A stretch of DNA of 64,000 nt from Macrostomum lignano (taxonomy: Eukaryota), in contig NIVC01001242.1 of the NCBI GenBank assembly GCA_002269645.1, positions 124,001 to 188,000 on the forward strand, read 5' to 3'. Position 1 is the first letter of the stretch. Every line of letters starts with the position of its first letter. The translations under genes and the position numbers were made by a program. Shown one piece after another: positions 370-44,578 of the stretch. The notes under the pieces were generated by a model that saw only the letters and a program-made list of their open reading frames with translations, was not told where the DNA came from and ran no database searches.

Positions 370-466
370 CATCTGTTCGTCTGTCACGCAAAACCGAAGC
401 AGCCACAGCTGCTTGGTGCACAAAAATGAGCAAAATCAGATGCTGCAGCGAACACCACGACAGCAT
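370..466 (-). CDS. Gene Z, first coding exon (signal peptide) of an EGF-array paralogue that continues beyond the window's left edge
   Basis: ATG at 466 gives MLSWCSLQHLILLIFVHQAAVAASVLRDRRTD, then a phase-1 GTGAGT donor at 369. It is clearly paralogous to the gene A leader exon (5136-5226), and the upstream region is duplicated too. Confidence 0.75.
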
Positions 467-1782
467 AATTGTATTCGATGATAAACCGTTTTGAGCTGAT
501 TGCAAAGCTGGGCCAAGGCTCGATTGGAAGTTTTACAGTTTGATATACAGCTGAAAAGGGTTTATGAGGCTAAATATTCACTTTCGTTAACAGCTTCTCC
601 TAACAAAAAATGCTGCAAGAAGACACGAAGGTATGGTTTTCTAATCAAACTGCTCTTAGCTAACGATCAGATAGCAGAGCTCACTGCGTTTGAAACAAAT
701 CAACGATTTCCAGCTTTTCTGTAAAAATACTCCAAAAATGGTGGTCAATATTGCGGCTTCTAAACGTTCTTATGGTATTTCAAATTCTATAAACTCAAAC
801 AAAGGCAAACTTAAATTTAAATATTTTAAGCTTTAAATATTGCTATCCAAGGTTTCTTTAAATGGGTAAAATGTCCTTTTACAATGAAGCTCACAATGTC
901 TCACAAGCACAACAATCAGTGCTTATTTATACAGCTAAAATAAAAAATACAAAATAATCTGAATAACAACTTAAAATACGAATTGAATGTTTTGATTCGT
1001 GCACACGAGCTTGTATTTCTTGTTGCCTTTGTTGCTGTTGATCTCTGAAAAAATAATAAAATAATTTTGTGTGGGTGAAAAAAAATTATCAGTATATTTA
1101 TACTTAAAGTATCTTGAATAAAACTATTCTAAAGGACAATCAGCCATGATGATAAAACTTATTGAGATTTGTTTATCAGATGAGAATACTGGTACAACGG
1201 TTCGATCACAAAATATTTCAGTATTAGAAATATTAATCGAAACTGCAATTCGTGTATCAAGATATTAGCAGCAGTGCTACTTGTCTAGAAAGAATGATGG
1301 TATACTTTACTCAAAAACTTCAAAAACTAAAAAAATAACAAGGCAACATGATTTTTTAATAAATGGCATTGTTTATTGCGATATGTACAGTTATGAATTT
1401 TCCTGCATCTGCTTCGAACGAGAACGCAGTATTAAAATGACTGCCGTCCTTCGATCCGAGGACCGAAATAATGCTTCATAAAGTCATTAAATTTAACTAC
1501 CAACAAGATGTGGCCAAAGCGACTTGGGTATTGTAGTATAAACACAGATATCATCCAACCGACCACCACAACTACTATCTACAATATGCTCATCACAGTA
1601 CATGGTGATTTTAAAATAGAACAAAAAAGTGCAGGTACGCTCCTAGAAGGTTTTTGTTACTTTTATTTATCCTGTGATGATAAATTGTACAAAAAGCTAC
1701 GTTACTTGACACAGTTCTTTGACCATTTCAACATCCTAATTGGCTCATACAGACTCTACAATCCCAAGTAAAACACAGACAT

Positions 1783-4700
1783 TCACATTCCACAGCTGTC
1801 AAAATATTGAATTAAATTTTTCATTTGGCAAGTCGAAAGAAAGTACGAGATTAATACGAGACTACGAAGAGCCGGAGCCTTGCAGACGGCTCCGTTCTGA
1901 CACGGCTGTCCGAACCGCTCGCACTCGTTGATGTCGACTGAGCAGGTCGGGCCCTCGTAGCCGGGAAGGCAGTCGCAGGAAAAGCTCCTGACACCGTCGG
2001 TGCACCTGCCGCCGTGCTGGCACGGGCTCGATGCGCAGTCATCGATCTTGGAGCTGCAGGTGACGCCTTGGAAGTCGACACGGGAGCATTCGCAGGTGAA
2101 CCTGATTTAGAGTTGAAAAAGGCAGTTTGACACCGTAAATGTGTGTGATGATGATGTGAGAATCATAAAGAATTGACTGTTCGTTTCATTGCTTGATAAA
2201 CACCTGTTTCAGCTTTGCGTAGCTGTCAAAGGAAGATATTTGGTCTTCAATGTCTCTTTAGTAGGATTTTCCTAAAAACTGCTTACGGAATTCTACAATT
2301 ATTTATGTTACACGCACCACTGCGCAGGCATCTCTGAGGTTCAATATGAACCGAAACTTTTTTCTAGAATAAAATATTACGAGGCACCGAAACTTCACAG
2401 CTTTACAATCAAAGCTGTCTTTGTGAACCAAGATGGGAGAAAAGGACTAAGTCTAGAGAATTATCAAATCTCAAAATTTTGTTTGGGATAAATGTCTGCT
2501 AAAACGTCATTTTCGGAAGTGTTCTCAACCGCAACGTTGAAAACGTTAAGCATGTTAGGCAACGTTTCAAAAGTTTCCATTTTTAGAGTCGAATTCAATC
2601 TCAAAAAATTTGCAAACAAGTCTCGAAGTTACTTGAGCCGTTTCTGTTCCTGCCACTATTTTATCTTGTAGTGTCGGACCAAAACTTTGAACTGGCTTTG
2701 AACAGGGGCTTGGGGCATCCGGATAGGCTCGTAAGTTGGGAAGAAATCAAACTCGTGACGTTAACTATTTCTAAAAACTTAAGTTACATGTACTAGATGA
2801 CAAGAAAGCTGTTAGGGCATGTGAGAAAAGTCTAAACTAAATTCATTCTATCGTTAATATTGTCTAAATCAAAGACTTCTGAATCAGATGCAATTCAATG
2901 AAAAAAATGGTAGAAAATTCCAATCTGAGGCTTTGCGCATGCAAAAACACATCTGCAGCTACCTAATAGCTCAGAGCAACTCACGTGGAGTTTCCGTCGC
3001 TGCAGACACCGCTGTTCTGACAGGGCCCTGACAGGCAGTAGTCAGTGTCCACTGAGCAGTTCCTGCCCTCCCAGCCTGTGAAGCAGCTGCAGCTGTAGTC
3101 ATTCACCAAGTCTGAGCACACGGCGTTGGCGCAGGGCTTGCTGGCGCAGTCATCAATGTTGATCTCGCAGTCAGTGCCTGTGAAGTTAACAGAGAATTTC
3201 AAAAGTTTCAAGAAATCATCTTCTGCTTGCGCTCCGCTATTTAGCACAAATTTTGCAAAAAGGATCGAATTTCAAGCCGAGAATTATAAAAATACACAAA
3301 ATTTTGAAGATTTCTTATCGTCTTCCAGACAGTGCAGAACAGAAAACGGAAACCTGAACAATGCCATTAAAAGCAGCCTTTGAATTGAATGCTTCTGGCA
3401 ACCAGAGCACTGTGCACTAAAAGCATGTCTATCATACATGCATAGGCGTGCTAAAGATGAATAGCATTGTCTCAAACTGTCAAAAATTCTGACTGGTGGC
3501 AAAGCGATCAGCATCGATTTCTGGCCTGAAACATATTTCTTCCAAGGCTTGTGCGATGAACGGAAAGAGCTATCGAAACGTGACGATAGCGGAGTGGCGC
3601 CTCCGACTCTTAGGTGGGCGATCCTTTATCTGAGGTGGGCGCTCCTGTCTCTGAGGTGGGCGCTCCCGTCTCTGAGGTGGGCGTCCCTGTCTCTGAGGTG
3701 GGCGCTCCTGTCTCTGAGGTGGGCGTCCCTGTCACTGAGGTGGGCGTCCCTGTCTCTGAGGTGGGCGTCCCTGTCTCTGAGTTGGGCCCTCCTGTCGCTG
3801 AGGTGGGCGTCCCTGTCTCTGAGGTGGGCGCTCCTGTCTCTGAGGAGGGCGCCCCTGTCTCTGAGGTGGGCGTCCCTGTCACTGAGGTGGGCGTCCCTGC
3901 CTCTGAGGTGGCGCCCCTGCCTCTGAGGTGGGCGCTCCTGTCTCTGAGGTGGGCGTCCCTGTCTCTGAGGTGAGCGCCCCTGCCTCTGAGGTGAGCGCCC
4001 CTGTCTCTGAGGTGGCGCCCCTGTCTCTGAGGTGGGCGTCCCTGTCTCTGAGGTGAGCGCCCCTCCCTCTGAGGTGGCGCCCTAGTCCTAGCTACATGAA
4101 ATTCCACGGTCGGTGGTTGCCATTTCCAAGAGGTAGCAAAAGTTGAGCCCTTGTCATTTCGCGAGACTGTTTAAATATTTCATTCAGTTTTTAAGGAGAA
4201 GATTTTTGTTACGGTGCAATTCTTTTCCGTCCCATGCCTACCTGCGCCCTCTCTCTGCAGGTGTCTCTCTCTCTCCATTGAGTATTTTTAGCAATTCATT
4301 TGTTTGACTTGCATCCTTTCTGGCTGGGCATTTACCCCAAAATTTAAACGAGCAAAACAGAAAATCAATGTTTAATAATCGAAAATATTTCTATCATCAA
4401 CTCAATCTCGCAAGCAGTTACGCGTAGTTATACGGCGCTTCATTTTCAACTGGTTTTGCCCCACCTGGTCACCCACCTGTGTAGCCGGGAACGCAGCTGC
4501 AGTGATACCAGGGGCTTGTGTCTGTGTTGCTGCAGGTGCCTCCGTTTTGGCAGGGATTGCCTGATGTTGTAGTACAGTAGTTTATTCTATCAGTGCAATA
4601 AAAACCAGTGTACGCCTCAGTGCACAGACACGGAGGAGTGCTTGACGTCACAGCGCCCGGCCAGCAAACCCCGCCATTCTTGCAGTCGCCCTCGCTGCAG

Positions 4701-5226
4701 GCGGCTCGCCTCGTCCGCGCCAATTCGTTGGCGTTTCTGTCAATCTCTGCAAAACATACAAGCATACAAACAACTCATTTGTAGAATTTTTAAAAAATAT
4801 AAATAAAGCATATATGCTGATTAGTAAAAATAGCAATTATTTTTCCATAGTGCAGTTCAAGGCCGAAAAAGTTAGCCTAAGACTCAATGACATAAAGTAA
4901 GTTTTATTTTAACAAACTTATTCAGTTCGGCGGCAAAAACAATACAAATAAAAACTAAAAAGCACTTCTAGATTTTTGAATTGTCGCAAAGCATTTTTCG
5001 TTAGCTCATAAAATTATCAATTACATTACTTGAGTCAATTGAGACCATGGCCTGAAACGCCACATCTGGCACAGCTAATGCCTTTCACTTCTCTCAAGTT
5101 CGAATAGTTTTAGAAAACTGCCAGAGCGGACTCACCATCTGGTCGTCTGTCATGCGAAACCGAAGCAGCCACAGCTTGGTGCACAAAAACGAGCAAAACC
5201 AGCTGCTGTGGCCAACACCACATCAT
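1783..5226 (-). CDS. Gene A: signal peptide, furin site, 5 complete EGF repeats plus a truncated sixth, no TM (secreted form or truncated pseudogene), about 290 aa
   Basis: Exons 5226-5136 (MMWCWPQQLVLLVFVHQAVAAS), 4746-4477, 3177-2985 and 2101-1783. All introns are GT-AG with compatible phases 1/1/2. Ca-binding EGF motifs (IDDCASKPC, INEC) are present. The last exon runs out of an EGF (CQNGAVCK) into non-EGF sequence and stops at TGA 1785-1783. Confidence 0.7.
3612..4080. repeat. 21-bp minisatellite CTGTCTCTGAGGTGGGCG(T/C)CC in gene A intron 2
   Basis: About 22 units. The same family occurs at 22032-22268 and, inverted, at 62588-63108. Confidence 0.95.
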
Positions 5227-5884
5227 AATTGTATTTGATTAACTGTTTTAGTTTATTCCAAAGCTGGACCCAAGCTCGATTCGGAGTTTTATTGTTCGAT
5301 ATGTAGCTGAAACAAAGGTATGAGGTGAAATATTAATTTTTCCTAAAAGCGCGTTTCTAACAACGAATAATGCAAGACATGGAAAGCATTGCTTTTAAAT
5401 CACAAATACTCCTAGCATTTTGAACAAAACAATGCGTTTCAGGCCTTTCTTTGTATAAATATTCCAAAAACGTTGGTAAATCTGGGCTTCTAAAGGTTAC
5501 TGAGATGCTGAAATTCTATAAATTCAAACAAAACGTACAGATTTTAATATTCTGCCAACCAACATTTCTTAAAATTTGTAGAATTTTATTTTACAATGGA
5601 GCTAACAATGTCCCAGGAGCACAACAATCACTGATTACTTTTACGGCCATAAGTAAAAACACGAAAGAATCTGAATAAAGACTGATTTATTGAATTAAAA
5701 CTTTGATTTCGTGTACAAGAGTTTGTGCTTTTGATTGCTTTTGCTGCTATTGAACCGTGAAAAAAATCATGACGCAAAATATTGTAAAAGTGAAAAATAA
5801 CTGTAAAATTATCAAATAGTTCATAGTCAGAGTATCTTGAATAGATAAATTGTCAGAGGTGAGTTAGCGGAAATGATTAAAAGT

Positions 5885-6725
5885 TCTTTAGGTATACATT
5901 CTCATCCTTTTCCAGGTGTGGCTATGGAAAAGGAAGTCCAAGGATGCATTTCTCAGGCCGAGGCGAAGCCGAGGCCTTGAGAATATCATATCGAGAATAT
6001 CATCCAAGAATATTTGGAAAAAGGAGGAGAAAATATTTAACCTACTGAAAGCAAAAGACGCATCAATATCCAGTACATTTAGTCTGTGGCACAAGCTATG
6101 TGACTGACTGGCTAAAGTGCTGAGAACCCAACAGCAGTTCATCAATTTTTTTCGTCTCCTACATACATAACAGTAACATTTTACAATGCAAGACGACTTA
6201 GATCTAGTGTTAAGATATTTTGAAAGTAAAGAATCCGCAGCAACGAATCCTGCTACGAGTTGTCACCCGTCGGCCGCCACAGCTTGGACGGTTTTGTTCG
6301 TGAATTAACAACTCCCCTAACTGGAGTGACTGAAAGGTAATCAGTCTCTATACAAGACTTGCGCAAGTACTCTACACCGTGCTGGCTTCGATAGAGAGGA
6401 CATTGCTCGTGTTACAGGACACTCTTCGACAGCTATTGAGCGCTATATTCAGTTTCGCGTACAAGACCATGTTAAAGTATCGCATGCTCTTCTGGTGGTC
6501 AGTCATCAGTCATTTCTTACTATGTTAAACTTCCTGTTGTTGGATTTGTTAATTTACATTTGTTAAATGCAACTGTAGCAGGACTGAGAACCATTTCTCA
6601 GGCCTCGTTTGGGGACTGAGAAATGGTTCTCAGTCCTCCTACTACCGATAAATTACCATAGAAGTTGTTGTTCCTCGGGAAAAGGATGAGACTGGGAAAG
6701 AGGCGAGAAATACACTTTCTGTAGG
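5885..6725. mobile_element. Unclassified insertion upstream of gene A (absent from the paralogous region upstream of gene Z)
   Basis: The flanks 5227-5880 and 6730-7335 align with 467-1830 without this block. It contains CCGAGGCGAAGCCGAGG and a 27-bp-arm hairpin. Boundaries are approximate. Confidence 0.55.
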
Positions 6726-7639
6726 TTAAATTTACTTATTGGACAAAAATACCGGCACACCGGATGGACCGAAATGTATCACAGCATAAAAATGATTCAT
6801 AAAAACTGCAGCAATACAACTTGCTTAAAAGACATACAGGTATACTGTACTAAAAATAGTCTGAAGCAGGCTATATTCATTTTTATAATAAATGGCATTG
6901 TTTGTTTTATTGCGAGTATATACGAGTATTTAGTAGTTCACCTGCATCTGGTTTAAACGAGAACGCATTATTAAAATGACGTGTCGTCTTTCGATCCGAG
7001 GACCAAAATAATGCTTTAGAAAAGTCACTAAATTGAACTACCAACCAGATGTGACCACAGCAACTTGGGTATTGTAGAAAAAACACATATCATCCAACCT
7101 ATTTACAATACGCTCATAAACTTACGGAGCAATTTAAACATAGCACGGAAATAGTACACCTATAGGAGTTTCGTTGCCTTTATTTTAACCTGTGATGATC
7201 AATTGTACAAAAGACACAGCTGCTTGAACCATTTCAATATCCTAGAAGGCTCATACAGACCCTACACTCCCGAATTGCACACGGTCATTCAAATTCCACA
7301 GCTGTCAAAATATTATCTATAATTTTTCAATAGGCATAGCAGCATATCCTATGCTATAAATAACCTATGAAGGATTTCTTAACCGAGCTACGCTTTTGTA
7401 AGAAAGGGACTAAAAAAAATTGATTTGGAAAAATTTTAAACTAAAAAAAGCAAACACGAACGCTTTAAAAGTGCAAAAAAGTAAAAAAAGATTCGCAATA
7501 TAAAAAATTATCAGTTGGTCGAAAAAGCCAGCACTGGAGTAAAAAGCGACAAAAACTGATCAAACTCACACGGAATGTTTCAACGCTACGCTTTTAATAA
7601 ATATGGGATGTCTTCCGCAGAAAAAAAACTGTTGCATTC

Positions 7640-10600
7640 TCACTGAAAGCCTTGATTAGCGTAAATGGCAGGTGCGAAATCCGAGTTCTCATTTGCGTAT
7701 TCGCAACCTGCAGCTTCAGCAATGGAATCCAGCTGGACTGGTGGAAGCGGCAGGTTCTGTCGATTTTTCTGCAGGGGGCAAAGTAAAAACAATAAATATA
7801 TATACTTCGTATGATATTCACTCATTATCATCAACAAAAAACATGAAAGGTCTCGATTGATTTCTCTTCAGCGTTAGAATTTTGAAGGTCTACTCGGTAG
7901 TTTGTTCGTTAGTAATAACACACCGTTTTTTCTTTCAAAAGTTATACTCGTAACAAATGTCAAGGAAAGCGAACCGATATCTTACAATTGAAGCTTTGCA
8001 GAGCTCTTCAGTAGCTGAGGCATACTGATGCGCTGAGTCAGCATCCTGCACCTTGGCATTCTGTGTGGGCACCAATATTTTGAATATTATTGAGAATTAA
8101 AACCCACATCTCAAAATGTATTTCGAAATTCCACAGCAAAGCTTACACGTAAAATTTCATCAGTTGATGAAACTGTTGGTTCCGCATACTTGGCTGGCTT
8201 GGTTCGGGATAAATAGCCCTAAAATTGGCAAAACGATGATCGCAATTACAGTTCATGCGTCATTGTCGCAGATAGCACAATATTATAACAATCTCTGCAC
8301 TTACAAAACGGATTAAAAGACCCACCACGGCGACAGCGAGCGCAGCTGTGAAGACGACAGCCAGTGCACCCACAACTGCGCCTACAACTACTGAAGAGCT
8401 TCGTGATTCTAAAAAAATATAGAACTCATATTCAGTAAAACACCTCTGTAGGGCGTAGGCCGTGCGCTGCACTCTCTGCCCCACATTATTATTTATGACT
8501 CATTCTCTCGCCTAAACTTGTTTGTTAATTCTCGACCAATCGCGCATCGCTTCACCCCACCCCACAATATTAACTAAAAATATATAGTAAGTAAACAGAG
8601 CCATACAGAGGCCACCTTTTTTTCGGCACGCAAACCTAGACTTCACAACCTCACTCGAACATATAAAAAATAAAACGCTTAGCTACATGAAATTCGAAAG
8701 CGAGTTTTGCCATTTCCAAGAGGGGACAAAAATTGAGCCCTTTTCATTTAACGAGATTGTTTAAATCTTTTTTTTCAGTTTTTAGGGATAAAAATTTTGG
8801 TAAGGGTGCAATTTTATCCAACCCGCCTCCATTCGCTCTCTCTCAACCATTGAGTATTTGTAGCAATTCATTAGATTGGCTTACATCTTTTTTGCTATGC
8901 ATTTTGTCAAAAAGGTAAACCAACGAAACAAAAAATCAATATTTAACACTCAAATGGCTTTCTATTATTAATATATTTTCTCAGGCAATTCGCAGGTGCG
9001 TCAATTTCAACTGGCTTTGCCCCACCTGGTCACCCACCTGTGTAGCCGGGAACGCAGCTGCAGTGATACCAGGGGCTCGCGTCTGAGTTGCTGCAGGTGC
9101 CTCCGTTTTGGCAGGGATTGGTTCTTGTAGCGCCAGCGTCCGAAGATGTAGCACAGAAGTCTATTCTAACAGTGCAATAAATACCAGTGTACGCCTCAGG
9201 ACACAGACACGGAGGAACGCTTGACGTCACAGCACCCGGCCAGCAAATGCCTCCATTCTTGCAGTCGCCCTCGCTGCAGGCGGCTCGCCTCGTCCGCGCC
9301 AATTCGTTGGCGTCCTTGTCGAACTCTGCAAAACATTTTTGGGTTTATAATTATCAGAATTTATTTGATAGGTCAGATAATTCAGTAAAATCCGGTTTTT
9401 AGAAACCCAGCAACCAAAGCATGTTGTGCTAAAACTTCAATATCTATCATGCATATATGTATACTAGAGCTTGATAGTCGCAAGCTTGAAAGAAAATCTG
9501 GAGGATAACATTGATAGCTGCTGTGATGAACGCAGGAATTATAATTTGGGGGCTACCCTAAAGGGGAGACAATATTCGGATTAAAAAACTGAAATCTCGC
9601 TTGTATTGAAGATTACTCATGACATGATCAGCTGAGCACAATCAAAATTTGAATCGTTGCATCAGTGAGCAATGCGATTTGATTCGAGTACAATATGAGT
9701 AGATACGAGCTACGATAAAGAACCTGGACACGCAAGCATCCTAATAATGAAATAGAAATTCAAAACTTCCGAATGGTGGCAGAGCCAGTAGCAGCGGATC
9801 CTGAATTGAAACTGATTTCTTCTAAGACTTGTGCGATGAACAGAAGAAGCAATGGAAACGTGACGATAGCGTTTTGGCACCCCAAACACTTTGTTAGGCG
9901 CCCCTGTCTCTTGGTGGGCGCTCCGGACTCTTCAGTAGGAGCCCATATAAGAAACCGAAGACAGGACACACTACAAGATTTTTTAGTTTATAAAGCCAAA
10001 TTGATTTGATAGGGCATGCAGATTTGCTAATTAAGTCGCTTAAGCTTCATTGCCTCGGCTACATCAGCTAAAATTGTGACCTAAAAACTATTTTGTATCT
10101 AACAGTTGCGATTCTGAGAAAAACTGAGCAAATTTCATTTACGTTAGATTCATTTGGGGCTTGTGTGCACGGAAGTTGGCCCGGAGATTGTCGTGTGAAG
10201 CCAGCGCCACTGTACACCCTGTGCTCAGGAGTCGGTGGATTTGTCGTCAGCGCTGTCAGTGGGGGATGTCGTCAAAGGCGCTGCGCCAGGTTGCCTACAG
10301 TCCTAATTCAAATATTTTAGTTCGTATTTTATCAAAGCCTGACACATCAGGTGTGCGCGGGCTATGGAATCCATTGGATCCGGACAGACTGTCGCTCCGA
10401 TGAGCAGCCGAATATATTCTGGAATTGAAATGCTATCCAAAGACCAAGAGCTTTTCAGTGTCTGGATTTTAACAAGAACATGGCGTGTTATAGAGTTCAC
10501 ATCTGGGTCCTTCTCATGGGCTCTTAGGGTTATTTCGGTACTTTAATTGGCATTCGTATTATAAAAAAGCAAGCTTTACCGAAGAAAACATTAGCAAGCG

Positions 10601-10729
10601 TAAAAATCACGTCAACTCACCAGCTGATTGTAAATCCTTTGAAACGGACTTGGAAGAGACCAGAGATGCCAGGTTTAACATCAAGATTATTTCCAAAGTC
10701 AGTAGCAGCTGTGCTTTGCATGAAAACAT
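7640..10729 (-). CDS. Gene B: small type I membrane protein (signal peptide, RTRR furin site, 2 EGF, TM, 42-aa tail), about 209 aa
   Basis: Exons 10729-10621 (MFSCKAQLLLTLEIILMLNLASLVSS), 9325-9038 (two EGFs), 8408-8305 (TM VVVGAVVGALAVVFTAALAVAVVGLLI) and 7768-7640 (tail KNRQNLPLPP...EYANE...IYANQGFQ*). Splice sites are canonical and the 630-nt total is in frame. Confidence 0.8.
8455..8645 (+). repeat. Dispersed ~190-bp element (second copy at 55431-55623)
   Basis: GTAGGCCGTGCGCT...GACCAATCGCGCATCG...CGGCACGCAAA(C/T)CTAGACTTCAC is shared by both copies. Class unknown. Confidence 0.8.
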
Positions 10730-11479
10730 TGCGAATCAACGGTTATGTTTGATTGTGGTTTCTATTGAAGCTGCAATCAGTCTTGATCGACTTGGAGAAA
10801 TGTTCTCGAGGCATGAAGTATTAGTGCGATTTTTTATTTAGGATGCAACAAAGACCCAAGCCTCCAATTTCGAAGTTTTGAACTGATTAGAAAACATGAA
10901 GAACTAAAAACAGTGACGGCTTAAAAAATCATTAAAACTGTCGTCGTTACTAATTAATAATTATTTATTTATCGTGCAAATTACGAGCCACTAAAGACAT
11001 TTGCTTCATTTACAGCAAAATCTACGAAATAAATGAATTTGTTTTAATGCTTGGATAAATTGTATCGACGCTAAAACAGCGCAAAAATTGATTCACCGAT
11101 AACGTGGTCATGATTAGCGCCTTACTGATTACTGCCAAAAACTGGACAGTACTGGCTAATACTGTATTGTAAAGAACATGAAAGCTGTTCGCGAACTGAG
11201 TCTATGGAAAATACTCGTAATCAATTACTCGTGAGTATTGTGCTCAGAATCTAATGACATGCATTAAAATAAATATCATTTGTTTGTTTTAATCTAAGCG
11301 TCTAAAACTACAGAAAGTAGCAGCATTAAAATAATCGCAACCAACTGGAAAAATGAAATAAATAACAAATAAATCTAGATTAAACAGATGATACAAGTAA
11401 AGTAAGCTACAACTCTAAGCAATGTATGAATAAAAATGTTTTCGAAAATTGCGCGAAGTCTCATGAAATGGGATCGTCA

Positions 11480-20400: not shown

Positions 20401-23341
20401 TGTCACCTGTGAATCCCGTGTCTGTGCAGGCACAGGTGAATCTGAAAAACAAGCAGAAAATTCGGATCTCTGGCAATAGAAATGCTTAGAATATTTCTAG
20501 CGGTGATTTCTGGTGACAAATTTTATTACAGACGACTCTTAAAAAACTCGGATTAGGTTTTATAGCTTTTAACTCGTACTTAGACTGCATTTTAGTTACA
20601 GTAGCCACTACCGAAACAAACTTATGGATAGAAACAGGAATGCAATCAGCTCGTAACTTTACTAAAAAACTAGGATTTTTTGTGTACGATGTTTTGTCAG
20701 ACATCGCTGCGTCTGGGAATAAATCCCATTCTGCCTCTCCGGTGTTGAGAATGCGGAGCACTTTATCTGTGAAAGCCCCGCCTCCACGCAGGAAGGCTCT
20801 TCTACCTTAGCCCACATCCGGGTCTTTTCGATGTTTTCAGGCCCGAGATTTTCTGCCAGCTCGTCCGCTACCTGAAAGCTACCAGGCTAGAGTCTATCCA
20901 CCTCCTGGAATTCTCCAGAGAGGGACCGCGGTGCGGTCAGCGGCACCACCGGATCTCCCTGTTCGAAACCGCAGCAATAACTGCCCGTGGTGGCCAGGGC
21001 CAGGGCCTAGAGCCCCCTGCAGATGATTCAAGTCAATAAGGAGAACTCACGTGCCGTTGCCATCAATGCACCTGCCGCCATTGAGGCAGGCGTCTGTTGG
21101 ACAGTCATTGTGGTTGATGCTGCAGTTCCTGCCCTCCCAGCCTGTGAAGCAGCTGCAGTTGTAGTCAGTCGCCAAGTCTGAGCACAGGCCGTTGGCGCAG
21201 GGCTTGCTGGCGCAGTCATCAATGTTGATCTCGCAGTTGGTGCCTGTGTTAAAAAACTGGAAATGTCAAAACTAACAAAGAAGTCAAGCTTTCTTGCTCG
21301 CTCTGCTACCCATGATATTTAGCATACATTTCAGGCATCAGTGAAACCTAAAAATAAGGGAACCTTAGTGCGGAAGCGCTAAAGCATGCGCATTATGCAT
21401 ATGAGCGTAGACTAAGGCAGAGAGATGCGACTGAGAGTTTACGAAGCCTCTTGGCGTTTATTAGATCGATACGCAGGTTAAATACGATACAACGATTGTT
21501 ACATAACTGGATATAAAAGATAGAGACAGGGGTGGGTGAAAAGCACGTACATGCTGTACAATAGCAACCCCCAACCTCGCCCTAGCGACTGGCGCATAAA
21601 AGTACACTTGCAACTCACTACATGAGTACTCGTACCAGAGCCTTGTCTCAAGCGTCAAAGTCACTAGCAACCCCCAACCTCGCCCTAGCGACTGGCGCAT
21701 AAAAGTACACTTGCAACTCACTACATGAGTACTAGAGCTTGTCTCAAGCGTCAAAGTCACTCAAAGCAGCCACCGTATTGATCACAGTAATTATAATTGA
21801 GGTGGCTACACTATTGGCTACCTTAAGGGGCGCCAATATTTAATTCGATTTCGAGTACAATCTGAGTACAACTCGCGCACACAACCGTCCTAAAATGAAG
21901 TCGAAACTTAAAACTTTCTGAATGGTGACAGAGCGAGCATCATATCGGGTCCTGGCCAGGAGCAGAGTTCTACCAAGGCTTGTGCGATGAACGGAAAGAG
22001 CAATCCGATAGTGGGTTGGCGCCTCGGAAACTGAGGTGGGCGCCCCTGTCTGTGAGGTGGATGCCCCTGTCTGTGAGGTGGGCGCCCCTGTCTGTGAGGT
22101 GGATGCCCCTGTCTGTGATGTGGGTGCCCCTGTCTCTGAGGTGGGTGCCCCTGTCACTGAGGTGGGCGCCCCTGTCTGTGAGGTGGATGCCCCTGTCACT
22201 GAGGTGGGTGCCCCTGTCTCTGAGGTGGGTGCCCCTGTCTCTGAGGTGGATGCCCCTGTCTGTTAGGTGGCCTAGCCATGCATGAAACTCCAAGGACGGT
22301 AGAAAACTTATCCAAGATGTGGCAAAATTTAGGCTCTTGTCTTTCAACAAGATTGTTTAACGCTTTCATTCAGTTTTTAAGGTAAGAAGTTGGGGTGGGG
22401 TGCAAATATTTTGGCCTGTTGTTGGGTGGGGGGAAGCTACCCTCCCCTTATTAGCCCTCTCAGTGAATGTCATTGACTATTTGTAGTAAGCTATTAGTTT
22501 GCCTAAAATCTTATTCGGCTGTGAATTTAGCTAAAATTTTAAAGGAGCAAAACATAAAATCTGTATTTGATATTATTTCTTCTATTTCTTCAAATAGATT
22601 TTTACTACCCGTTTCAATTTCAACTGGCTTTGCCCCACCTGATCACCCACCTGTGTAGCCAGGAACGCAGCTGCAGTGATACCAGGGGCTCGCGTCTGTA
22701 TTGCTGCAGGTGCCTCCGTTTTGGCAGGGACTGCTTGAATTGGTGCTGCTATCCGAAGTTGAAGAACAGTAGTTTATTAAATGAGTAGTGCAATAAGGAC
22801 CAGTGTACGGCTCAAGACACAGACACGGAGTGTCTGACGTCACAGGACCCGGCCAGCAAACCCCGCCATTCTTGCAGTCGCCCTCGCTGCAGGCGGCTCG
22901 CCTCGTCCGAACCAACGTGTTGGCGTCCTTGTCAAACTCTACAAAAAATTTTTGTGTTGTTATAAAGTACATATGCGGGTCCTTCTCATGGGCTCTCGGG
23001 GTATTAAAATTGGGATAAAAAGTCAATTATGTCAATTGGATGAGGTCAACCTAAAGTTTTTTTCTTCAAATGAGCAACTTGGATGATGAGATGTCTCAGC
23101 GGCTGTAGTTGTCGATCGCAGTCTGGAGTTTCACCTCGGGTTTATTTCGGTACTTTAATTGGCATTCGTATTATAAAAAAGCAAGCTTTACCGAAGAAAA
23201 CATTAGCAAGCGTAAAAATCACGTCAACTCACCAGCTGACTGTAAATCCTTTGAAACGGACTTGGAAGAGACCAGAGATGCCAGGTTTAACATCAAGATT
23301 ATTTCCAAAGTCAGTAGCAGCTGTGCTTTGCATGAAAACAT
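11480..23341 (-). CDS. Gene D: Crumbs-like type I membrane protein (SP, furin site, 11 EGF plus a half EGF, 1 LamG, TM, tail ending STHL), about 834 aa
   Basis: 11 exons: 23341-23233, 22938-22651, 21243-21051, 20441-20214, 18308-17986, 17920-17749, 17660-17539, 17460-16720, 13272-13100, 12334-12254, 11554-11480. All are GT-AG and phase-consistent (2505 nt). It contains the Crumbs-type long-loop EGF (CLERSNQALYG...FSYALAAGFVCLC) and the LamG C-terminal motif FKGCLDNLRLNG. Confidence 0.8.
11612..12135. repeat. 21-bp minisatellite TGTGAGATGGTGGCTGGGTTT in the last intron of gene D
   Basis: About 24 units seen directly. Confidence 0.95.
12570..12793. mobile_element. MITE with ~85-bp terminal inverted repeats and TA target duplication (Tc1/mariner-like)
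   Basis: CACCTTTTCACGTTCAAT...CAGACTGGGG on the left is a near-perfect inverse of the right end. TA lies at 12568-69 and 12794-95. It is not seen in the paralogous intron of gene E. Confidence 0.85.
13374..13575 (-). mobile_element. 3' part of a tRNA/CORE SINE, split by the gypsy insertion
   Basis: Matches the SINE copies at 54331-54640 and 58800-59112 (GATGTGCAACCGACAGCTCAGCCGCAGCTATTGCGCGGCG, CCCCAGCTAATGCTGG). Confidence 0.85.
13735..16350 (+). mobile_element. Decayed Ty3/gypsy LTR retrotransposon (RT-RNaseH-integrase; gag and protease missing) inside a gene D intron
   Basis: RT fragment KLDATQSFLQLELDEDSK...FIDDIMV; RNase H CDASSYRLGAVISH...YAQIDKKALA; integrase HHCC (LHEGHPG...CRRC, IYVDF). 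Several stops and frameshifts. A polypurine tract at 16267-16283 is followed by TG at 16284. The putative LTRs are only weakly similar, so their limits are approximate. Confidence 0.85.
16480..16558 (-). mobile_element. 5' tRNA-like head of the same split SINE
   Basis: The reverse complement GGGGTTGTAGCCTAGTGATTAGAGCGTCGGACTCACGAC...GGTTCGATCC carries A/B-box-like motifs and matches the heads of the other copies. Confidence 0.8.
20715..21035 (+). mobile_element. 3' fragment of a related non-LTR retrotransposon in gene D intron 3
   Basis: PFCLSGVENAEHFICESPA (degenerate CCHC), frameshifted LVRYLKATRL, and an AAGTCAA tail like that at 52230-52250. Confidence 0.6.
21563..21762. repeat. Tandem duplication of a ~100-bp unit
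   Basis: AGCAACCCCCAACCTCGCCCTAGCGACTGGCGC...GCGTCAAAGTCACT occurs twice, head to tail. Confidence 0.9.
22032..22268. repeat. 21-bp minisatellite in gene D intron 2 (family of 3612-4080)
   Basis: Unit CTGTCTGTGAGGTGG(G/A)(C/T)GCCC. Confidence 0.95.
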
Positions 23342-24079
23342 TGCGAATCAACGGTTATGTTTGATTGTGGTTTCTATTGAACCTGCAATCAGTCTTGATC
23401 GACTTGGAGAAATGTTCTCGAGGCATAAAGTATTAGTGCGATTTTTTATTTAGGATGCAACAAAGACCCAAGCCTCTAATTTCGAAGTTTTGAACTGATT
23501 AGAAAACATGAAGAACTAAAAACAGTGACGGCTTTAAAAAATTAAAACTGTCGCATTTACTAACTAATAATTATTTATTTATCGTGCAAATTACGAGCCA
23601 CTAAAGACGTACGCTCCATTTAAAATAAAATCTACAAAATACATGTAATTGAATTTGTTTTAATGCTTGGATAAATTGTATCGACGCTAAAACAGACGCT
23701 TAATATGATTTACCGATCATGTCATCATAAGTAGGTCTTTACTGATTACTGCCAAAACACAGCGCACTGCTGGCTAACACTGTATTTTAGAAAGTCAGGG
23801 GGTCTAGAGTAACATTGTGCAATAAACAAACTAATCAGATTACACGTGAGTATTGCGTTCAGTGACTCGTGACATGCAATAGAATAAATTTCACTTGTTT
23901 GTTTTACTCTGAGCGTTTAAAACTACAGAAAGTAACAGCAGTGAAGTAATCGCAACCAGCTGGTAAGAAATGCAAAAAAATAACAAACAAAAATACATTT
24001 AACAGATAATACATGTAGAGTAAATTGCTAATTTATAAGTAATGTATGAAGACAGTGTTTTTGAAAATTGCGCAAAGTC

Positions 24080-27000
24080 TCATGAAATCGGAGCATCATA
24101 GGTATTATCAGGTTGCTGGCCATCATGAAATGCGACATCGCCAGGTGCGACAGCTTCATCAGGTACCTAATTGAGTATTTTAATTTGGGTATGCAAAATG
24201 TTCAGCTGGTTGTATAAATTTCAGGCTTCTGTGAGATGATGGATGCATTCTGTGAGATGATGGATGGGATCTGTGAGATTGTGGATGGATTCTGTGAGAT
24301 GGCGGATAGATTCTGTGAGATCGGGGATCGATTCTGTGAGATGATGGATGAATTCTGTGAGATGGGGGATCGATTCTGTGAGATGATGGATGAATTCTGT
24401 GAGATGATGAATGAATTCTGTGAGATGATGGATGAACTCTGTGAGATGGGGGGTCAATTCTGTGAGATGGGGATCGATTCTGTGAGATGATGGATGAATT
24501 CTGTGAGATAGGGGATCGATTCTGTGAGATGATGGATAACTTCTGTGAGATGATGGATGAATTCTGTGAGATGATGGATTCTGTGAGATGATGGATTCTG
24601 TGGGATGGTATATGGATTCTGTGTTTTCTTGAGTAAATCTATAAGTACATATATCCTAATAATTTAAGTGCAATGCACCTGCTCCAACGATTGATCCTCG
24701 GACAGATCGATGCCCTCATCGGTCGGAGTGGGTGGCAGGGCTCGACCAGCATTGGCTCCCTGGTAAAACATTAAATTTCCGTTTTTAAAAAATAATCATG
24801 TTTTATTGGTTCTTGACGTTAACATTGATTAAAACAAACTTTTGTTCATTACTTTTCAATCAAATCGGCAATGAACAGGTTTTTAATTTGTTTTATTTTT
24901 TTTCGTGATATACAAGATTTGATTGTTCTTTAGAACGAAAAACTTTAAGAAATGATTTGTAAACTTTTAATTTTAGATAAATTTACGAGTAGATAAATAG
25001 AACTTAAAGATCTTGTATATAGGTAAATATAAATTCCATACATGCAAGAGAGCTTGACTAAAGTGACCATTGGCACATTTTAACAAAAAAGTAAACTTGT
25101 TGATTTAAAATCCAGAACACAATTTCACACTTACTAAACAAACGTAGCTAAGAGAACCGGGCAAACCAGTATCCTGACTACCGTCCGCCTCGAGTGGATT
25201 TTCGTAAGTGTACACCTAAATTTGAAGAAAAAATATGCCAAGTTAGTTTTCTACTGCAACTACACATCGCGTGAAGTTATTAGTCTTATTACACAATTAA
25301 AGAAACTTACCGCGCTAGAGTCTCTTTGATCAGCGACAAGGTAGCCACTGCTAGGACGCAGCTCTACATTTGCGTCTGCATGAGGCACCGGCTGACTTCC
25401 ATTGGATTCGCTGTCAGAGGCAGCGCTTTGAGAAGTTGGACGACAATTCAGCTTCTTTTTTAAATAAACTGCTAGTAAAGATGCTGGAATGAAGTCATCG
25501 ATAAATGGGTGTCTTATTTGGGGCATGTTGGGGTTCTGTGGGATGATGGATGGGTTCTGTCAGATGGTGGATGGATTCTGTGAGATGATGGATGGGTTCT
25601 GTCAGATGGTGGATGGATTCTGTGAGATGGTGGATGGGTTCTGTCAGATGGTGGATGGGTTCTGTGAGATGATTGATGGATTCTGTCAGATGATGGATAG
25701 ATCCTGTGAGATGATGGATGGATTCTGTGAGATGGTGGATGGGTTCTGTGAGATGGTGGATGGGTTCTGTGAGATGGTGGATGGGTTCTGTGAGATGGTG
25801 GATGGGTTCTGTGAGATGGTGGATGGGTTCTGTGAGATGGTGGATGGGTTCTGTGAGATAGTGGATGGGTTCTGTGAGATGGTGGATGAGTTCTGTGAGA
25901 TGATGGATTGGGTCTTTGAAATAATAGATAGGTTCGGTGACATGGTGAATGATGTGATGATAATGAGTTTTTTCAGCACATGTATCTTTTCTACCCCTCA
26001 CCGATAGCAATCAAGATGACAACAACAAGCGCGGCGCCAACCGCAACAACAATAGCTGTGGGAAAATCAGCAGGTGACGCATCCTTGACGGAACACTCTT
26101 TGCCAAGAAATCCAGCAGGACAGTCGCATTTGAAGTCGTTCCAAAGAGCCACACATTGGCCACCATTTAAGCAGACATTGGAAGGAGTTTTCTGGCAAAC
26201 CACGTCGCCATGACAACCAGTCAGGATTGAAGACGCAGCCATCCAATTAAATCCCGAATAACCGCTTGGCAGGGAGCGATTGACGAGTGGCACCAAGTAA
26301 CCGTTGAGTCGCAAGTTGTCAAGGCAACCCTTGAATCCGGGGCCCCCAGCTGTAACCGTAGCAGAATAATCCAGGATCAAACCAGCTGGAATCGGCGTTG
26401 TGTCTGCCAACACCCGGAAATCGCTAGCATTGGTCGACACACCAGCGGTCAAAAAGCCACCCTCAGCACAACTAATACTGAAGTTAAATGGTAAACCTGT
26501 TGCTATGGAAACCGCCACCAATACTGTCCGGTCGTTAAGAGAGACTTTAAAGTGTCCGGACTCGCAACCAACTGACAGCTGATGACTGCCGCTGAGCACG
26601 GTCAGTAGATGGCAGTCTGACTGACGAGTGCGGGCCCAGCCGGTAACCGCAGTCAGAGTTTCGTTGAGACCAGTCACCGATAATGCAATCTGGCTGCTTG
26701 ATGGCGATATCAGAGAGCTGCCGAATGTTGCAGCTGTGCGGCCTGAGTTTCAGAGGAAATTTAGCCACATGTCAAAATAGAAATACAAGAGAGTGCTACT
26801 AAAAGTAGTCTATAACTCACACTCAAATCCGCCAGAGTCCAATTGTACGCACTTCGTTCCGTTAGGGCAGTATTGGTCAGCAAAATAACAATGGTCTTTC
26901 ATTGTACAATTGGGTCCGAACCATCCCTCAGTGCAGTTGCACCTGTGAAAACAGTTACACGGCAAGAAGATTTTAATTTATCGCCAACTGGTCAAGAAAC

Positions 27001-30000
27001 AGCTATCTACAACTCACGTATAGGAATTGTAGAAAGCATTAGTGCAAACAGCTCCGTTCTTGCAAGGCAAGAATGTCTGGCAAGCATTCTCCGTAGATAC
27101 GCCAGTGAGCACTGATGAGTAGCTAGCTGAGACAGCCTCTGGCAAGCTGTCAATCAAGCTGGAGGTTACAGGACCGAGAATCAGTGGCCGGTCACCGTTC
27201 AGTCTCGCAGATCCAACGATGCCACGAAACGCGGTGATGTTGTCTGGCAACAGAGATGCGACGCCGCTAGGAAGACTCGGCGCTGATCTCTTTGACCGAG
27301 AGACACCAGCCGAAGAATCAACAAGCGACGGAGCCGGGGCTGCCCGAAGACCGCTGAAGCCGCCGATGATGAGCTGGCCTGACAGCTGCGGCAGCGGACT
27401 CGCACTGCTCAGCGATGCCGACCTGACTGAAGATGACACTGACAGCGACAGCGAGCGACCCGATATCGACACGGAGATCTTCACGGAGACGAAGCTGCCG
27501 GTGGCCACCGAGTCTGAGGACGTCAGCGCTGCGATGAGGGACCCGTTGCTATGCAGTAACTGGGCGGACAGACGGCCATCGTGAACGATCTGAAAAGATG
27601 CAAACAAAACTGAAAACATTTGAAAAATAATTAAAACACATCAATAAAGACACTGACCCTAGCGAGCAGTCTCAGAGTGGTCGCCGAGTCGCTCGGGTCG
27701 CCCAGCAGCAGCAGAAACGCTCCTCGAGACAAAGTCACCAGCCTCAGCTCAATCGTCCACGAGTTATTAGCAGTGAAATTCGAGTCAGCAGGATTTAGGG
27801 ACGAAAAACTGGCTGATGAAGCGTTGCCATCCAGACCAAACGCAAAATCGGGAAGCTGGACCGAACAGTTGCGTCCAGCAAAGCTCCGCTCCAGGCTGCA
27901 CACGCACCGGTAGTCGTGAAGGGGAGTCGGGAACTCCTGCACAAGAATCGGCTCGCACGTGGCGCCGTTCTGGCACCAGTTGGAGTCGCAGCCGGTGAGG
28001 CTCACCGAGCACTTCCTGCCGCCCAGTCCGGCAGGGCAGTTCGCGCACTCGAAGTCCGCCAGCCGGTCGATGCAGGTCGCTCCGCTGGGACACGGCGGGG
28101 GCAGCGACCGACACTCGTCGATCTCTCGGCTGCAGTTTGAGCCCTCGTAGCCGGGCAGGCAGTGGCAGGTGAATGAGGCCAGGCCGTCCGTGCAGCTCGA
28201 CGCGTGAACGCACACGCTGCGGTTGGTGGCCGGATCCAGACAGTCGTTCGGGTTGATCTCGCAGTGGGTTCCATAGGCACCTGCACGAGAACTCGTAGAT
28301 GTATTTTACGTGTAAAATGCTTCTAGAACAATTCCAGATAAGGAAAGCAAATCAAAACAGTACCAGACGGGCACCAGCAGATGTAGCCGGCAGCCATCGA
28401 ATAGTTAAAGGTGCCATTGAACGGTGGCGGGTAACCAGCCAGTCCGTAGTACTTCTGGTTGCTGATCTCCAGACAACGACCCTCGTTTTTACACAGGTGC
28501 GGCGTGCAGTCCTCGTAGTCTATAGAGCAGTCTGGGCCGGAGAATCCATCGTAGCAGTTGCAGGTGTAATTTCTGAACCCGTCGATGCAGACCGCCCCGT
28601 TCTGGCACCGATTCGGCATGCAGTCGTCAATGCGGTTCTGGCAATTCGCGCCGTAAAAGTCCGTAGTGGAACAGTTGCAGGTGTAACTTCTCAAGCCGTC
28701 GGTGCATTTGCCACCATTTTGGCATGGGTTCGGTTGGCAATCGTTGATCCACGAGTTGCAATTTGTACCTTCGTAATCTGTGTCTTGACAATAGCACGTG
28801 TACCTGAGTAAGGGTAATTATTTACATGTATTTAACGATACTGATTGTCTTTTGTGCTGTATGTAAGCTGCATTGGAGTTGAACCAATGTCCTATGTTTT
28901 AGCTACTTCTCAATTAAAAAAGAAGCATATTCTTACTTGCATGCCAAGTGTATGCTTACAGTGTAACTCTTATGAACCATAACTACATTGTTAAAAGCAG
29001 GGCTCGCCACCGGGAGGACAAGGAGATGTCCCCGCCCAGTAAAAGCTATGTGGGGTCATGACAATGCTTTGTCCCCTTGTACCCCACGTGTCCCCACCCC
29101 ATCTTAATTGTGACCCGTTGTGGAAAGCAATAATTTTGTTTCAAAATGCTAAATATAGCACCTGTGGCGCTAAAATGAGTGTCTGCGGCGCTAAAATGAG
29201 TGCCTGTAGCGCTAAAATGAGTGTCTGCGGCGCTAAAATGAGTGCCTGTGGCGCTAAAATGAGCGCTGAAAACAGACTCAAAATAATGTACATACAGGAA
29301 TTTAGTCATGTACATGTACATTTAAAATTCTTGCTTTGTCCCCCCACCATAAAATCCATGGCGACGCCCCTGGTTAAAAGCGTTTAGACTTGATTAGAGT
29401 TGTGTTTAGTTGAGCTTGTTTGTGTTACATGCAGATTTATTTGATCGTGTAGATCCATGTAAATGTACACGCATTTTTTAGTTTTAATTGTTTTATTAAT
29501 TGGTTATACATGTACTCTATAGATGTAAGTGTAGTTAAGAAGAAACACAACTTCAAAAGTTATTAAAACACAAAAGACCAATCTTTTAGCTGTGTGAACA
29601 AACAACATTGGTGAATTTTGATTGATTGTTATGTAAATTTTCTATGTAAATTATGTAAATTATGTAAACAAACACTTTACATGTATATTTTAGTGTGTTA
29701 TTCTTGAATGCACACATTTTTTGCCACTTGGTCATGTTTAGAAGCGATGGTTAAGAGACTCTAAGCTATCGATTGTTTAGTTGCCAAGGCATTAGCAATT
29801 ATCTGCAATCTTGCTAGAGATGATCAACACTGTGCTCAAGCTGCAGGACTCACGTCGTCTCTCCACTGCTACACAAGCCGCCATTTTGACACGGCTTCGA
29901 TTGGCAATAGTCCACGCTAGATGCGGCTCGCCGCGATGCAGTCAGCTGCAGTTCTAAGCCCTGGCAACTGCCCAGCAACCAGCAGCAGTGGAAATAGTAA

Positions 30001-30050
30001 ACAAATAATATACTTTTGACAACCATAACTATCTGTAGACATTGTGCCAT
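24080..30050 (-). CDS. Gene E: Crumbs-like type I membrane protein (SP, 7 EGF, LamG, 2 EGF, LamG, EGF, TM, tail), about 1011 aa
   Basis: 9 exons: 30050-29854, 28803-28364, 28280-27658, 27589-27018, 26942-26821, 26742-26002, 25483-25311, 24759-24679, 24166-24080. All are GT-AG and phase-consistent (3036 nt). It has the Crumbs-type EGF (CLEISNQKYYG...FNYSMAAGYICWC) and two LamG domains, but the tail lacks the Crumbs FERM/ERLI motifs. Confidence 0.85.
24225..24620. repeat. 21-bp minisatellite TCTGTGAGATGATGGATGAAT in the last intron of gene E
   Basis: Tandem units, related to 11612-12135. Confidence 0.95.
25520..25915. repeat. 21-bp minisatellite TCTGTGAGATGGTGGATGGGT in gene E intron 6
   Basis: About 18 tandem units. 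Confidence 0.95.
28998..29372. mobile_element. hAT-like MITE with 8-bp TSD, carrying an internal 21-bp minisatellite
   Basis: GTTAAAAG at 28990-28997 and 29373-29380. The imperfect TIRs are CAGGGCTCGCCA and (reverse complement) CAGGGGCGTCGCCA. The internal unit is GCTAAAATGAGTGTCTGCGGC. Confidence 0.85.
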
Positions 30051-30553
30051 TGTGCCGTCTGAAGTATAAATTTGACAACTCAACAAATGCAAAAATGGTA
30101 AAACTCTGCAAACTCAAAAATTTAAATCAAAACAGCCAAAGTTCAACTAGTGCAACAAATTTGAAATTAATAATCATGAAAAAACCATACTTTACTTAAC
30201 TAAAAAGTTACTATATAAAAAGCATAAGTCCGTATTTATTGTCAATTGGTATTTTAATAAACGATATATATATATACTAAATGTCTAATTAAAAATTTCT
30301 TCAAGCAAAGTTAATTAGTGCGCAATATCTATTGTAGAATTTCTTGATAGAATTATATTTTGACATGATTAATTGAATAGATATAAAAAGAGAGAATGCT
30401 AGAGATTAAATAGAGCATAGTTAGAACACGCAAGTTACTAAAAAAATTATGAAGCAGATGCACTACAGATGTACTAAAATCATAGCAAGGAGAAAACTTG
30501 CAGTAGAATTTTCTTAGAAATGAACTAAGCTAAGTAAAGTGTGCTCTTATAGT

Positions 30554-30725: not shown

Positions 30726-30847
30726 TTAAACCAGTTTGACCATCTACTAGAGCAGATCGAGGTTGGCAAACTTCGGACGGGGAAGCCTCTCTATCCGGCC
30801 CTCGGGTCTTTTGAAACTTCGCAATAGCAATCCGGCCCACTCAATGT

Positions 30848-44153: not shown

Positions 44154-44578
<425 letters not shown>

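Follow-up and report, generated by a model that had tools for sequence, protein, structure and literature searches.

Crumbs proteins, such as Drosophila Crb and vertebrate CRB1 and CRB2, are type I membrane proteins usually present in one to three copies, and while their short tail is well studied, the role of the large ectodomain is poorly understood. Caenorhabditis elegans likewise possesses several Crumbs paralogues (crb-1, eat-20 and crb-3), with ectodomains shortened to different degrees, although all three genes carry Crumbs-type tails, and neither tail replacement nor a tandem mosaic array has been described for them (PMC4359734). In this study, we analyse a window of 64,000 nucleotides from the flatworm Macrostomum lignano, namely positions 124,001 to 188,000 of contig NIVC01001242.1 (279,953 bp; assembly GCA_002269645.1), in which at least five co-oriented genes, here called E, D, B, A and Z in their order on the minus strand, are built from EGF and LamG modules. 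Positions are window coordinates unless given as record coordinates, a window coordinate being the NIVC01001242.1 record coordinate minus 124000, by exact sequence match. The explanation that we favour, at a probability of roughly 0.68, is that these genes belong to a Macrostomum-specific family of Crumbs-derived single-pass membrane proteins, which forms a gene cluster spanning some 150 kb of this contig, far beyond the window, and in which a canonical Crumbs gene is retained together with reshuffled paralogues bearing other tails. This lineage-specific Crumbs expansion with tail replacement is unreported as far as we have searched, our literature searches having returned no paper on the cluster, nor any relevant work on Crumbs in Macrostomum or flatworms.

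The likeness to Crumbs lies in the type I membrane protein layout, the long-loop EGF (C..SNQ.LY....FP..F.Y..AAGF.C.C), the CSV.LTGC EGF before the first LamG, the alternation of LamG and EGF domains, and the WNDF.C.C EGF after a LamG; in addition, an array member outside the window, P0243 (P0388 and similar designations are labels for database proteins), is colinear with Crumbs over ~1,300 amino acids (aa). The window genes differ from Crumbs in having zero to two LamG domains, not three, and no long EGF run after LamG3; in the N-terminal RTRR and EGF-pair module of A, B and D, which falls outside the colinear Crumbs alignment; in their transmembrane (TM) segments and tails, which are without the GTY FERM-binding motif and the ERLI PDZ ligand; and in forming a many-member tandem family, compared with one to three genes in other animals. 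EYS (eyes-shut) and Notch/Delta are also multi-EGF proteins, and EYS shares the possession of LamG domains, but has no TM segment. The allorecognition clusters Hydractinia Alr and Botryllus fuhc, as well as the clustered protocadherins, are like the window array made up of co-oriented tandem paralogues that have modular ectodomains, vary in domain number and bear tails of several types; compared by description, however, they belong to other domain families, and the variation in the window is carried by whole genes, not by alternative first exons.

An earlier note on this DNA had proposed at least five co-oriented genes assembled from a shared kit, and its outline holds. All EGF-pattern stop-free segments in window 1-32000 lie on the minus strand, and self-BLAST of the window gives duplicated blocks of 70-90% identity over 0.3-1.5 kb, far above chance, with Z seen only as a leader exon. 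Spliced models were built by reading exon junctions, and all introns in them (24/24) are GT-AG. The leaders begin with MLSWC in Z (466-370), MMWC in A (5226), MFSCK in B (10729) and in D (23341), and MAQCL in E (30050), and the furin-site EGF-pair exon is found in A (4746-4477), B (9325-9038) and D (22938-22651), and is absent from E. The LamG count is two in E, one in D and zero in A and B, as compared with three in Crumbs and in P0243. As regards the endings, the related long tails of E and D and the missing TM segment of A stand as the note described them, whereas the short tail ascribed to B does not, since it measures 107 aa.

The Crumbs origin of the ectodomains, also proposed in that note, is borne out by several searches. 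With the concatenated models as query, M. lignano paralogues came first, followed mostly by Crumbs of echinoderms, hemichordates, nemerteans, molluscs and arthropods, which outnumbered Notch. When the LamG region of E was used, 39 of the 40 top non-Macrostomum proteins were Crumbs with an ERLI-type ending (E[RK][LI]I), and Notch and EYS proteins ranked last. Residues 72-1396 of P0243, a transcript-based model on the same contig as the window, are colinear with residues 544-1875 of the Crumbs of the nemertean Lineus (32% identity, 608 bits, three LamG domains covered); P0243 is also colinear with Branchiostoma Crumbs, and E and D align with Crumbs over 470-860 aa. A profile derived from the LamG common to D and E in two hmmsearch rounds matches LamG1-3 of canonical Crumbs, LamG3 best; a profile of this LamG compared with PDB sequences gave no significant match, the best relevant one being neurexin at E = 1. 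The exon of E that encodes the Crumbs LamG3-type domain, the last EGF (WNDFKCDC) and the TM segment (26002-26742, minus strand) gave no match in a word-index search, which was a false negative, as an exhaustive search returned 1,541 relatives, with CRB1 proteins aligned across the LamG part. Near-identical relatives of that exon were present in the same database, and negatives from indexed tools hence need caution. A single-sequence AlphaFold model of this exon was too poor for use (pLDDT 39.8). The Pfam matches of E and P0243 are confined to EGF-type and Laminin_G families, and none of the LNR, NOD, ANK, DSL or CUB domains is found in either.

The same note held that none of these proteins has the Crumbs FERM-binding/ERLI tail, and every approach to this question was negative. 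A hidden Markov model (HMM) built from 45 distinct Crumbs tails, for which shuffled controls reach 7.4 bits, scores B at -0.3 bits, D at -0.9 bits and the tails of P0243 and P0127 at -0.3 bits or lower, as against 27.5 bits for the positive control P0388, and gives no reportable match to the E tail. There is no exon with E[RK][LI]I before a stop on the gene strand in window 1-32000, such as a missed ERLI exon would be, and a tblastn search of the window with the tail of M. lignano Crumbs returned no match. A diverged Crumbs tail was suspected in ..GVRVGHLR..PQEVFF, the tail that P0243 shares with P0126, but this reading was dropped, the HMM score of -2 bits lying below the shuffled controls. 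The canonical Crumbs is P0388 (BOX15_Mlig013136g1, PAA70382.1), which keeps the tail KYVQNRRKESGTYGPSKAESRSNAHAQAQPPVRPPPEERLI (..RRKESGTYGPS..PPPEERLI) and is encoded at record 4193-9463 of the same contig, on the plus strand and thus opposite to the array, ~115 kb from the window start; an identical copy is found on NIVC01001923.1. Over the LamG3-EGF-TM part, no other paralogue is closer to E and D, and exon 26002-26742 of E shows ~50% identity to P0247, the representative of the 90% cluster that includes P0388. In a neighbour-joining tree of the LamG3-type domain only, all M. lignano copies cluster, with E and D sister to P0388, and P0243 with P0126, then P0260 with P0419, as the next branches. 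Because of this grouping and of the separate ERLI-bearing P0388, E and D are taken for in-paralogues, not for a mis-modelled orthologue, and the possibility raised in the note, that E is the canonical orthologue with a missed ERLI exon, falls away. As judged from sequence, the window genes are probably in-paralogues of Crumbs that have lost the polarity tail.

Two further observations concern relatives of Crumbs in this genome. In P0260 (BOX15_Mlig002106g5, on a 191-kb contig), the FERM-binding half of the Crumbs tail is preserved (RNRRSETGQYRPS; 16.9 bits with the tail HMM), but the protein ends in ..NMQVARL, not ERLI; its sequence suggests a transitional stage in the divergence of the tail. 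A Ser-rich LamG stretch of 42 aa (SVSISGRSLSLSVSSSVRSASLSSASPLPQLSGQLIIGGFSG, in the LamG1 exon of E) is identical in E and P0388, and identical or nearly so in P0127, P0130 and P0243, although the surrounding LamG sequence has diverged. The DNA of this region (27764-27351) is 90% identical to one copy on NIVC01000114.1 (hereafter contig 114), and the exon is ~80% identical to two others, which suggests gene conversion or strong constraint.

Gene E (24679-30050, minus strand) has at least eight exons (30050-29854, 28803-28364, 28280-27658, 27589-27018, 26942-26821, 26742-26002, 25483-25311 and 24759-24679), for which splice sites and frames were read, and Pfam EGF and Laminin_G_2 matches. Its layout comprises the MAQCL signal peptide, EGFs including a Crumbs-type long-loop EGF (CLEISNQKYYGLAGYPPPFNGTFNYSMAAGYICWC, in exon 28364-28803), LamG, EGFs, LamG, EGF, TM segment and a tail of at least 83 aa. 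LamG1 of E passes Pfam at 32.9 bits, and the LamG common to D and E falls below the cut-off. The E parts of P0121 and P0123, two predictions from the ML2 assembly, are 94-96% identical to window E; UniProt automatic names for such fused predictions are 'Delta-like', 'Notch' and 'Cubilin'. Gene D (12254-23341, minus strand) has ten exons (23341-23233, 22938-22651, 21243-21051, 20441-20214, 18308-17986, 17920-17749, 17660-17539, 17460-16720, 13272-13100 and 12334-12254) and consists of the MFSCK leader, RTRR and EGF pair, EGFs, a long-loop EGF, one LamG, an EGF, a TM segment and an E-type tail. Its long-loop EGF exon (CLERSNQALYGNPTMPAPFNGSFSYALAAGFVCLC, 17986-18308, minus strand) has its counterpart within E exon 28364-28803, and its LamG-EGF-TM exon is 89.5% identical to that of E at the nucleotide level. 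DNA alignment of D with E reveals a 1.1-kb deletion that takes out ~2.5 EGFs and LamG1 in frame, with two tandem GTGAGT donors at the junction (GAC/GTGAGTAC/GTGAGT; 17749-17770, minus strand). Both genes have an extra tail exon (12334-12254 in D, 24759-24679 in E) that ends in a conserved donor. The 3.4-kb intron of D between TM and tail holds a degenerate retroelement with reverse transcriptase and RNase H (14021-15866, plus strand; Pfam RVT_1 and RT_RNaseH) in broken frames. A dispersed repeat of ~180 bp (13375-13556, 54343-54516, 58812-59002 and 38957-39156; 71-87% identity, one copy inverted) has one copy ~100 bp upstream of the first tail exon of D and another within the region of a G-protein-coupled receptor gene.

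Gene B (7640-10729, minus strand; exons 10729-10621, 9325-9038, 8408-8305, 8218-8147, 8060-7986 and 7768-7640, the last including the stop) encodes an intact mini-receptor of 258 aa, with the same MFSCK leader as D, RTRR, two EGFs, a TM segment and a cytoplasmic tail ending in ..CEYANENSDFAPAIYANQGFQ. This tail extends over three exons (8218-8147, 8060-7986 and 7768-7640) and is homologous to that of the transcript-based BOX15_Mlig025742g2. Leader, TM segment and tail of B match the transcript-based P0127 (903 aa), the internal exons of which are all missing from B. Gene A (1786-5226, minus strand; four exons, 5226-5136, 4746-4477, 3177-2985 and 2101-1786) has the MMWC leader, RTRR and EGF pair, and ~3.5 EGFs, with no TM segment; its homology ends mid-EGF after ..CQNGAVCK (~1878), and 31 unrelated codons follow to the stop. 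Either A is a remnant left by truncation, which is the probable case by a good margin of confidence, or it encodes a secreted fragment; its sequence recurs in the ML2 prediction P0124. The Z leader exon (MLSWCSLQHLILLIFVHQAAVAASVLRDRRTD, 370-466, minus strand) has its donor at 370, with the rest of Z beyond the window start, and P0124 extends this leader into a long EGF/LamG/TM protein. The RTRR and EGF-pair exon of D (22651-22938, minus strand) is paralogous to exons 9038-9325 of B and 4477-4746 of A. The RTRR, which fits the furin-type R-X-K/R-R consensus, lies 10-14 residues past the leader exon in A, B, D, P0126, P0127, P0130 and P0243, and cleavage there is only predicted.

Beyond the window, the genes that follow Z in transcription order are a 651-aa EGF/TM gene, a 186-aa gene, P0243 (record 89034-66303), an RTRR exon, a 713-aa EGF gene (~record 18.8 kb) and Crumbs. 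The 651-aa annotated member has few EGFs and a long Tyr-rich tail with repeated Y-x-x-[PDM], and the 186-aa annotated mini-member has a single long-loop EGF and a TM segment; the two lie at L005 5852-9471 and 1-4769 (record 89.5-99 kb). Further members, for which the earlier note had called for a genome-wide search, were found on the same contig and on at least eight others, thus on at least nine contigs in all, and the copies on other contigs include near-identical but structurally different ones. Contig 114 carries a parallel array in the same order, with a copy of D (D'), P0127 as a B-type gene of 903 aa, an uncalled B-type gene, the A/Z-type P0130, and one more gene. Window 19592-11615 is 99.2% identical to this array over 7,984 bp, the core being essentially 100% identical and including the retroelement in the D intron, which D' shares at essentially 100% identity. 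Past this 8-kb block, identity is 96% and then 94% through the B leader and RTRR exon; there the match breaks, and it declines further to 85% and 82%.

It is between these near-identical copies that structural differences appear. Exons 5-10 of D encode a protein 100% identical to that of D', and D' is without D exon 4, a tandem duplicate of exon 3. The 10 kb in which P0127 has all its internal EGF/LamG exons are missing from B; the RTRR exon and the B TM exon are both of intron phase 1, which keeps the deletion in frame, and the TM and tail exons of B share only 82-86% identity with those of the contig-114 genes, which makes B a recombinant. The break in the contig-114 array falls at L002 12126, and a 21-bp minisatellite starts 3 bp on, at L002 12129. 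Minisatellites of this family (GGGCGCCCACCTCAGAGACAG) occupy the intron after the RTRR/EGF exon of A (3596-4082) and the corresponding site after the RTRR exon of D (22032-22270), and are absent from B. A second 21-bp family (GCTGGGTTTTGTGAGATGGTG) lies between the D tail and the B leader (11615-12167), with related arrays in and after the E tail introns (24227-24596 and 25531-25951); another related 21-bp array is found far off, at 62557-63110. Gene A is a mosaic, in that its four exons (leader, RTRR exon, exon 3 and exon 4) have their nearest counterparts in four different contig-114 genes, and past its mid-EGF break the homology switches to sequence that, in the contig-114 array, lies downstream of a gene. 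As read from the aligned DNA, these comparisons show reshuffling that can be attributed to unequal or ectopic recombination and intronic deletion. The diversification by unequal crossover suggested in the note is in agreement with the mosaic identities, the exon-level deletions and duplications between near-identical copies, and the breakpoint at a minisatellite, and the data support a family that evolves by birth and death through duplication, intronic deletion and ectopic exchange.

Constraint on these genes is apparent from seven paralogue comparisons, in which exons are 80-99% identical, as against 59-88% for flanking non-coding DNA. Ratios of non-synonymous to synonymous change (dN/dS, Nei-Gojobori) are 0.19 for the D-E LamG, 0.2-0.5 for most EGF exons and 0.13-0.3 for most tail exons of B. 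The RTRR/EGF-pair exon is the fastest-evolving module, with 0.48-0.85 within the window and 0.5-2.1 against other loci, at small counts (e.g. 7 non-synonymous vs 1 synonymous), and between B and D it evolves faster than the D-E LamG (Fisher p = 0.003). No module has a dN/dS significantly above 1 in these pairwise comparisons, whose counts are small. The comparison of dN/dS by domain that the earlier note had asked for has thus revealed a fast N-terminal EGF pair, but not a significant excess above 1.

The DV1 inbred line of M. lignano has a neopolyploid genome with three paralogous subgenomes, which differ by ~2% single-nucleotide polymorphisms and are rich in indels, and the Mlig_3_7 assembly holds mis-represented paralogues and chimeric scaffolds (PMC10733133). 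On this background, the array might be a product of post-polyploidy decay, the window being one of three redundant subgenome copies and the shortened D, B and A, perhaps also E, non-functional deletion derivatives, which would accord with the fuller versions elsewhere (P0127 for B, the 1122-aa P0130 for A, and P0243 with its three LamG domains for E and D), with the mid-EGF stop of A, with the particular donor choice on which D relies, and with the absence of deposited gene models for the window genes. We consider this unlikely, given that no pseudogene marks are seen in B, D and E, whose frames are open through 6-10 exons with all splice sites intact (in D via the second donor), that the B deletion is exactly in frame with its tail conserved, and that exons are more conserved than introns; moreover, the 186-aa EGF and TM gene and other transcript-based mini-members are annotated in the cluster, and short forms are therefore normal for the family. 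D and D' proteins are identical as well, which has little statistical power because the copies differ at only ~0.1% of sites. E and B are probably functional genes, and for D the chances are about even. The conserved GT donors, rather than conserved stops, at the ends of the last E and D tail exons might instead indicate that E, D and B belong to a single transcription unit, giving either a polycistronic precursor that is split up by spliced-leader trans-splicing or one fused multi-pass protein. The gaps are short (~1.3 kb from the last E exon to the D ATG), P0121 and P0123 splice the E tail in frame to the D leader or RTRR exon, and ~7% of M. lignano transcriptional units are precursors for at least two proteins (PMC5730564). 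This arrangement seems quite improbable, however, as the transcript-based P0127 starts at the MFSCK methionine, which shows the MFSCK exon in use as a true start of coding, the junction differs between the two fused predictions, and an in-frame join has a one-in-three chance.

The role in allorecognition, immunity or gamete recognition that the note had put forward has fared less well than its description of the genes. In a hermaphroditic, regenerating flatworm, self or tissue, sperm, egg or partner might conceivably be recognised through a furin-exposed EGF pair and a variable EGF/LamG ectodomain, with Tyr/Pro tails routing the signal, and a diversifying system of this kind would derive its specificity from the variable ectodomain and fast-evolving tip. 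It could draw on the structural differences between near-identical copies, the highest dN/dS (0.5-2.1) in the membrane-distal RTRR/EGF-pair exon, which includes a Ser/Thr-rich loop of variable length, the several tail types with Tyr motifs, and the size of the family; were it true, new specificities would arise continually by minisatellite-assisted unequal recombination among the three subgenomes. Both the system and this use of its parts are very doubtful, however, since purifying selection acts on LamG and on the majority of EGF exons, dN/dS is below 1 for the greater part of the modules and, for the N-terminal EGF pair, no more than near 1, and subgenome copies differ structurally throughout this genome (PMC10733133); the differences seen here separate paralogous or subgenome copies within a single inbred line. 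That collapsed or chimeric haplotypes mimic a tandem array is suggested by the known faults of Mlig_3_7 and by the 8 kb shared at 99.2% identity with another contig, but is extremely improbable: the window copies differ by 10-30% and have their own introns, and are therefore not haplotypes, the contig-114 array repeats the same gene order, and ML2 predictions independently show E then D, and A then Z, which argues against mis-assembly.

The favoured explanation of a Crumbs-derived family has itself several points against it. GenBank calls no gene in the stretch inspected, window 21472-31472, where E lies, and a database search found none of the five window models among the annotated proteins; the five are predicted models drawn from genomic DNA. 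The missing gene models were considered as an argument against expression and rejected: the GenBank annotation left out transcripts overlapping repeats (PMC5730564), and its silence on the window genes therefore says little. The frame of D is kept only with the second of its two tandem GTGAGT donors, the truncation of A sits at a rearrangement boundary, the models of D and E probably stop short of the true 3' ends, as their last known tail exons end in conserved donors, and ML2 gene predictors join E to D in frame. The neighbour-joining tree is without bootstrap support. A paralogue dN/dS below 1 may reflect selection before the deletions, or on one copy only, and exon homogenisation by gene conversion could mimic exon conservation. 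The 'signalling-type tails' of the earlier note could not be upheld, since they rest only on Tyr/Pro motifs that are short and frequent by chance.

According to the Crumbs-derived family model, the canonical gene with FERM-binding and ERLI tail has stayed at one contig end, and repeated tandem duplication would have produced paralogues with a Crumbs-type EGF/LamG ectodomain and with TM segments and tails unrelated to Crumbs. Unequal or ectopic recombination and intronic deletion, favoured by phase-compatible exons and the intronic 21-bp minisatellites, and supplied with near-identical templates by the three neopolyploid subgenomes, have then given an E minus one LamG, a D minus two, a B stripped of all that separates the N-terminal EGF pair from the TM segment, and an A cut mid-EGF as a mosaic. 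The signal peptide would be removed and the protein adopt type I topology; in A, B and D, a furin-type convertase would cut a short propeptide at RTRR, exposing the fast-evolving EGF pair at the tip, and the EGF/LamG ectodomain would bind cell-surface partners. The tails would presumably not recruit PALS1/Stardust or FERM proteins as Crumbs does, and may dock SH2/SH3-type adaptors through YxN and YxxP motifs (YAEP, YANE and YANQ) in B and RALPPTP in E. One animal thus keeps a canonical Crumbs and, nearby, dozens of variants with ectodomains trimmed module-wise and unrelated tails, a natural deletion and tail-swap series on a Crumbs ectodomain freed from the polarity machinery, and at the same time an example of intronic minisatellites, phase-compatible exons and neopolyploidy driving the birth and death of a receptor family. 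M. lignano is open to transgenesis, RNA interference and in situ hybridisation (PMC5730564).

The array is flanked by two GenBank-annotated genes on the minus strand, an intronless 3-ketodihydrosphingosine reductase (SDR) gene (31472-32515) and an ALG2-like GT4 glycosyltransferase gene (35306-37213). Further along the window, plus-strand frames with an SRCR domain and a ZP-C domain (47979-48404 and 49530-50780), between which lies a (GTCA)n-type microsatellite, probably belong to one SRCR-ZP membrane protein, and the rhodopsin-family G-protein-coupled receptor gene (57560-59788, minus strand; 7tm_1, 54.8 bits) has at least two exons. Long and very regular tandem arrays are formed by a 66-bp unit with ~95% identity (34205-35148), a pure trinucleotide run that would read as poly-Tyr (44139-44608) and a 15-bp unit (45403-46126).

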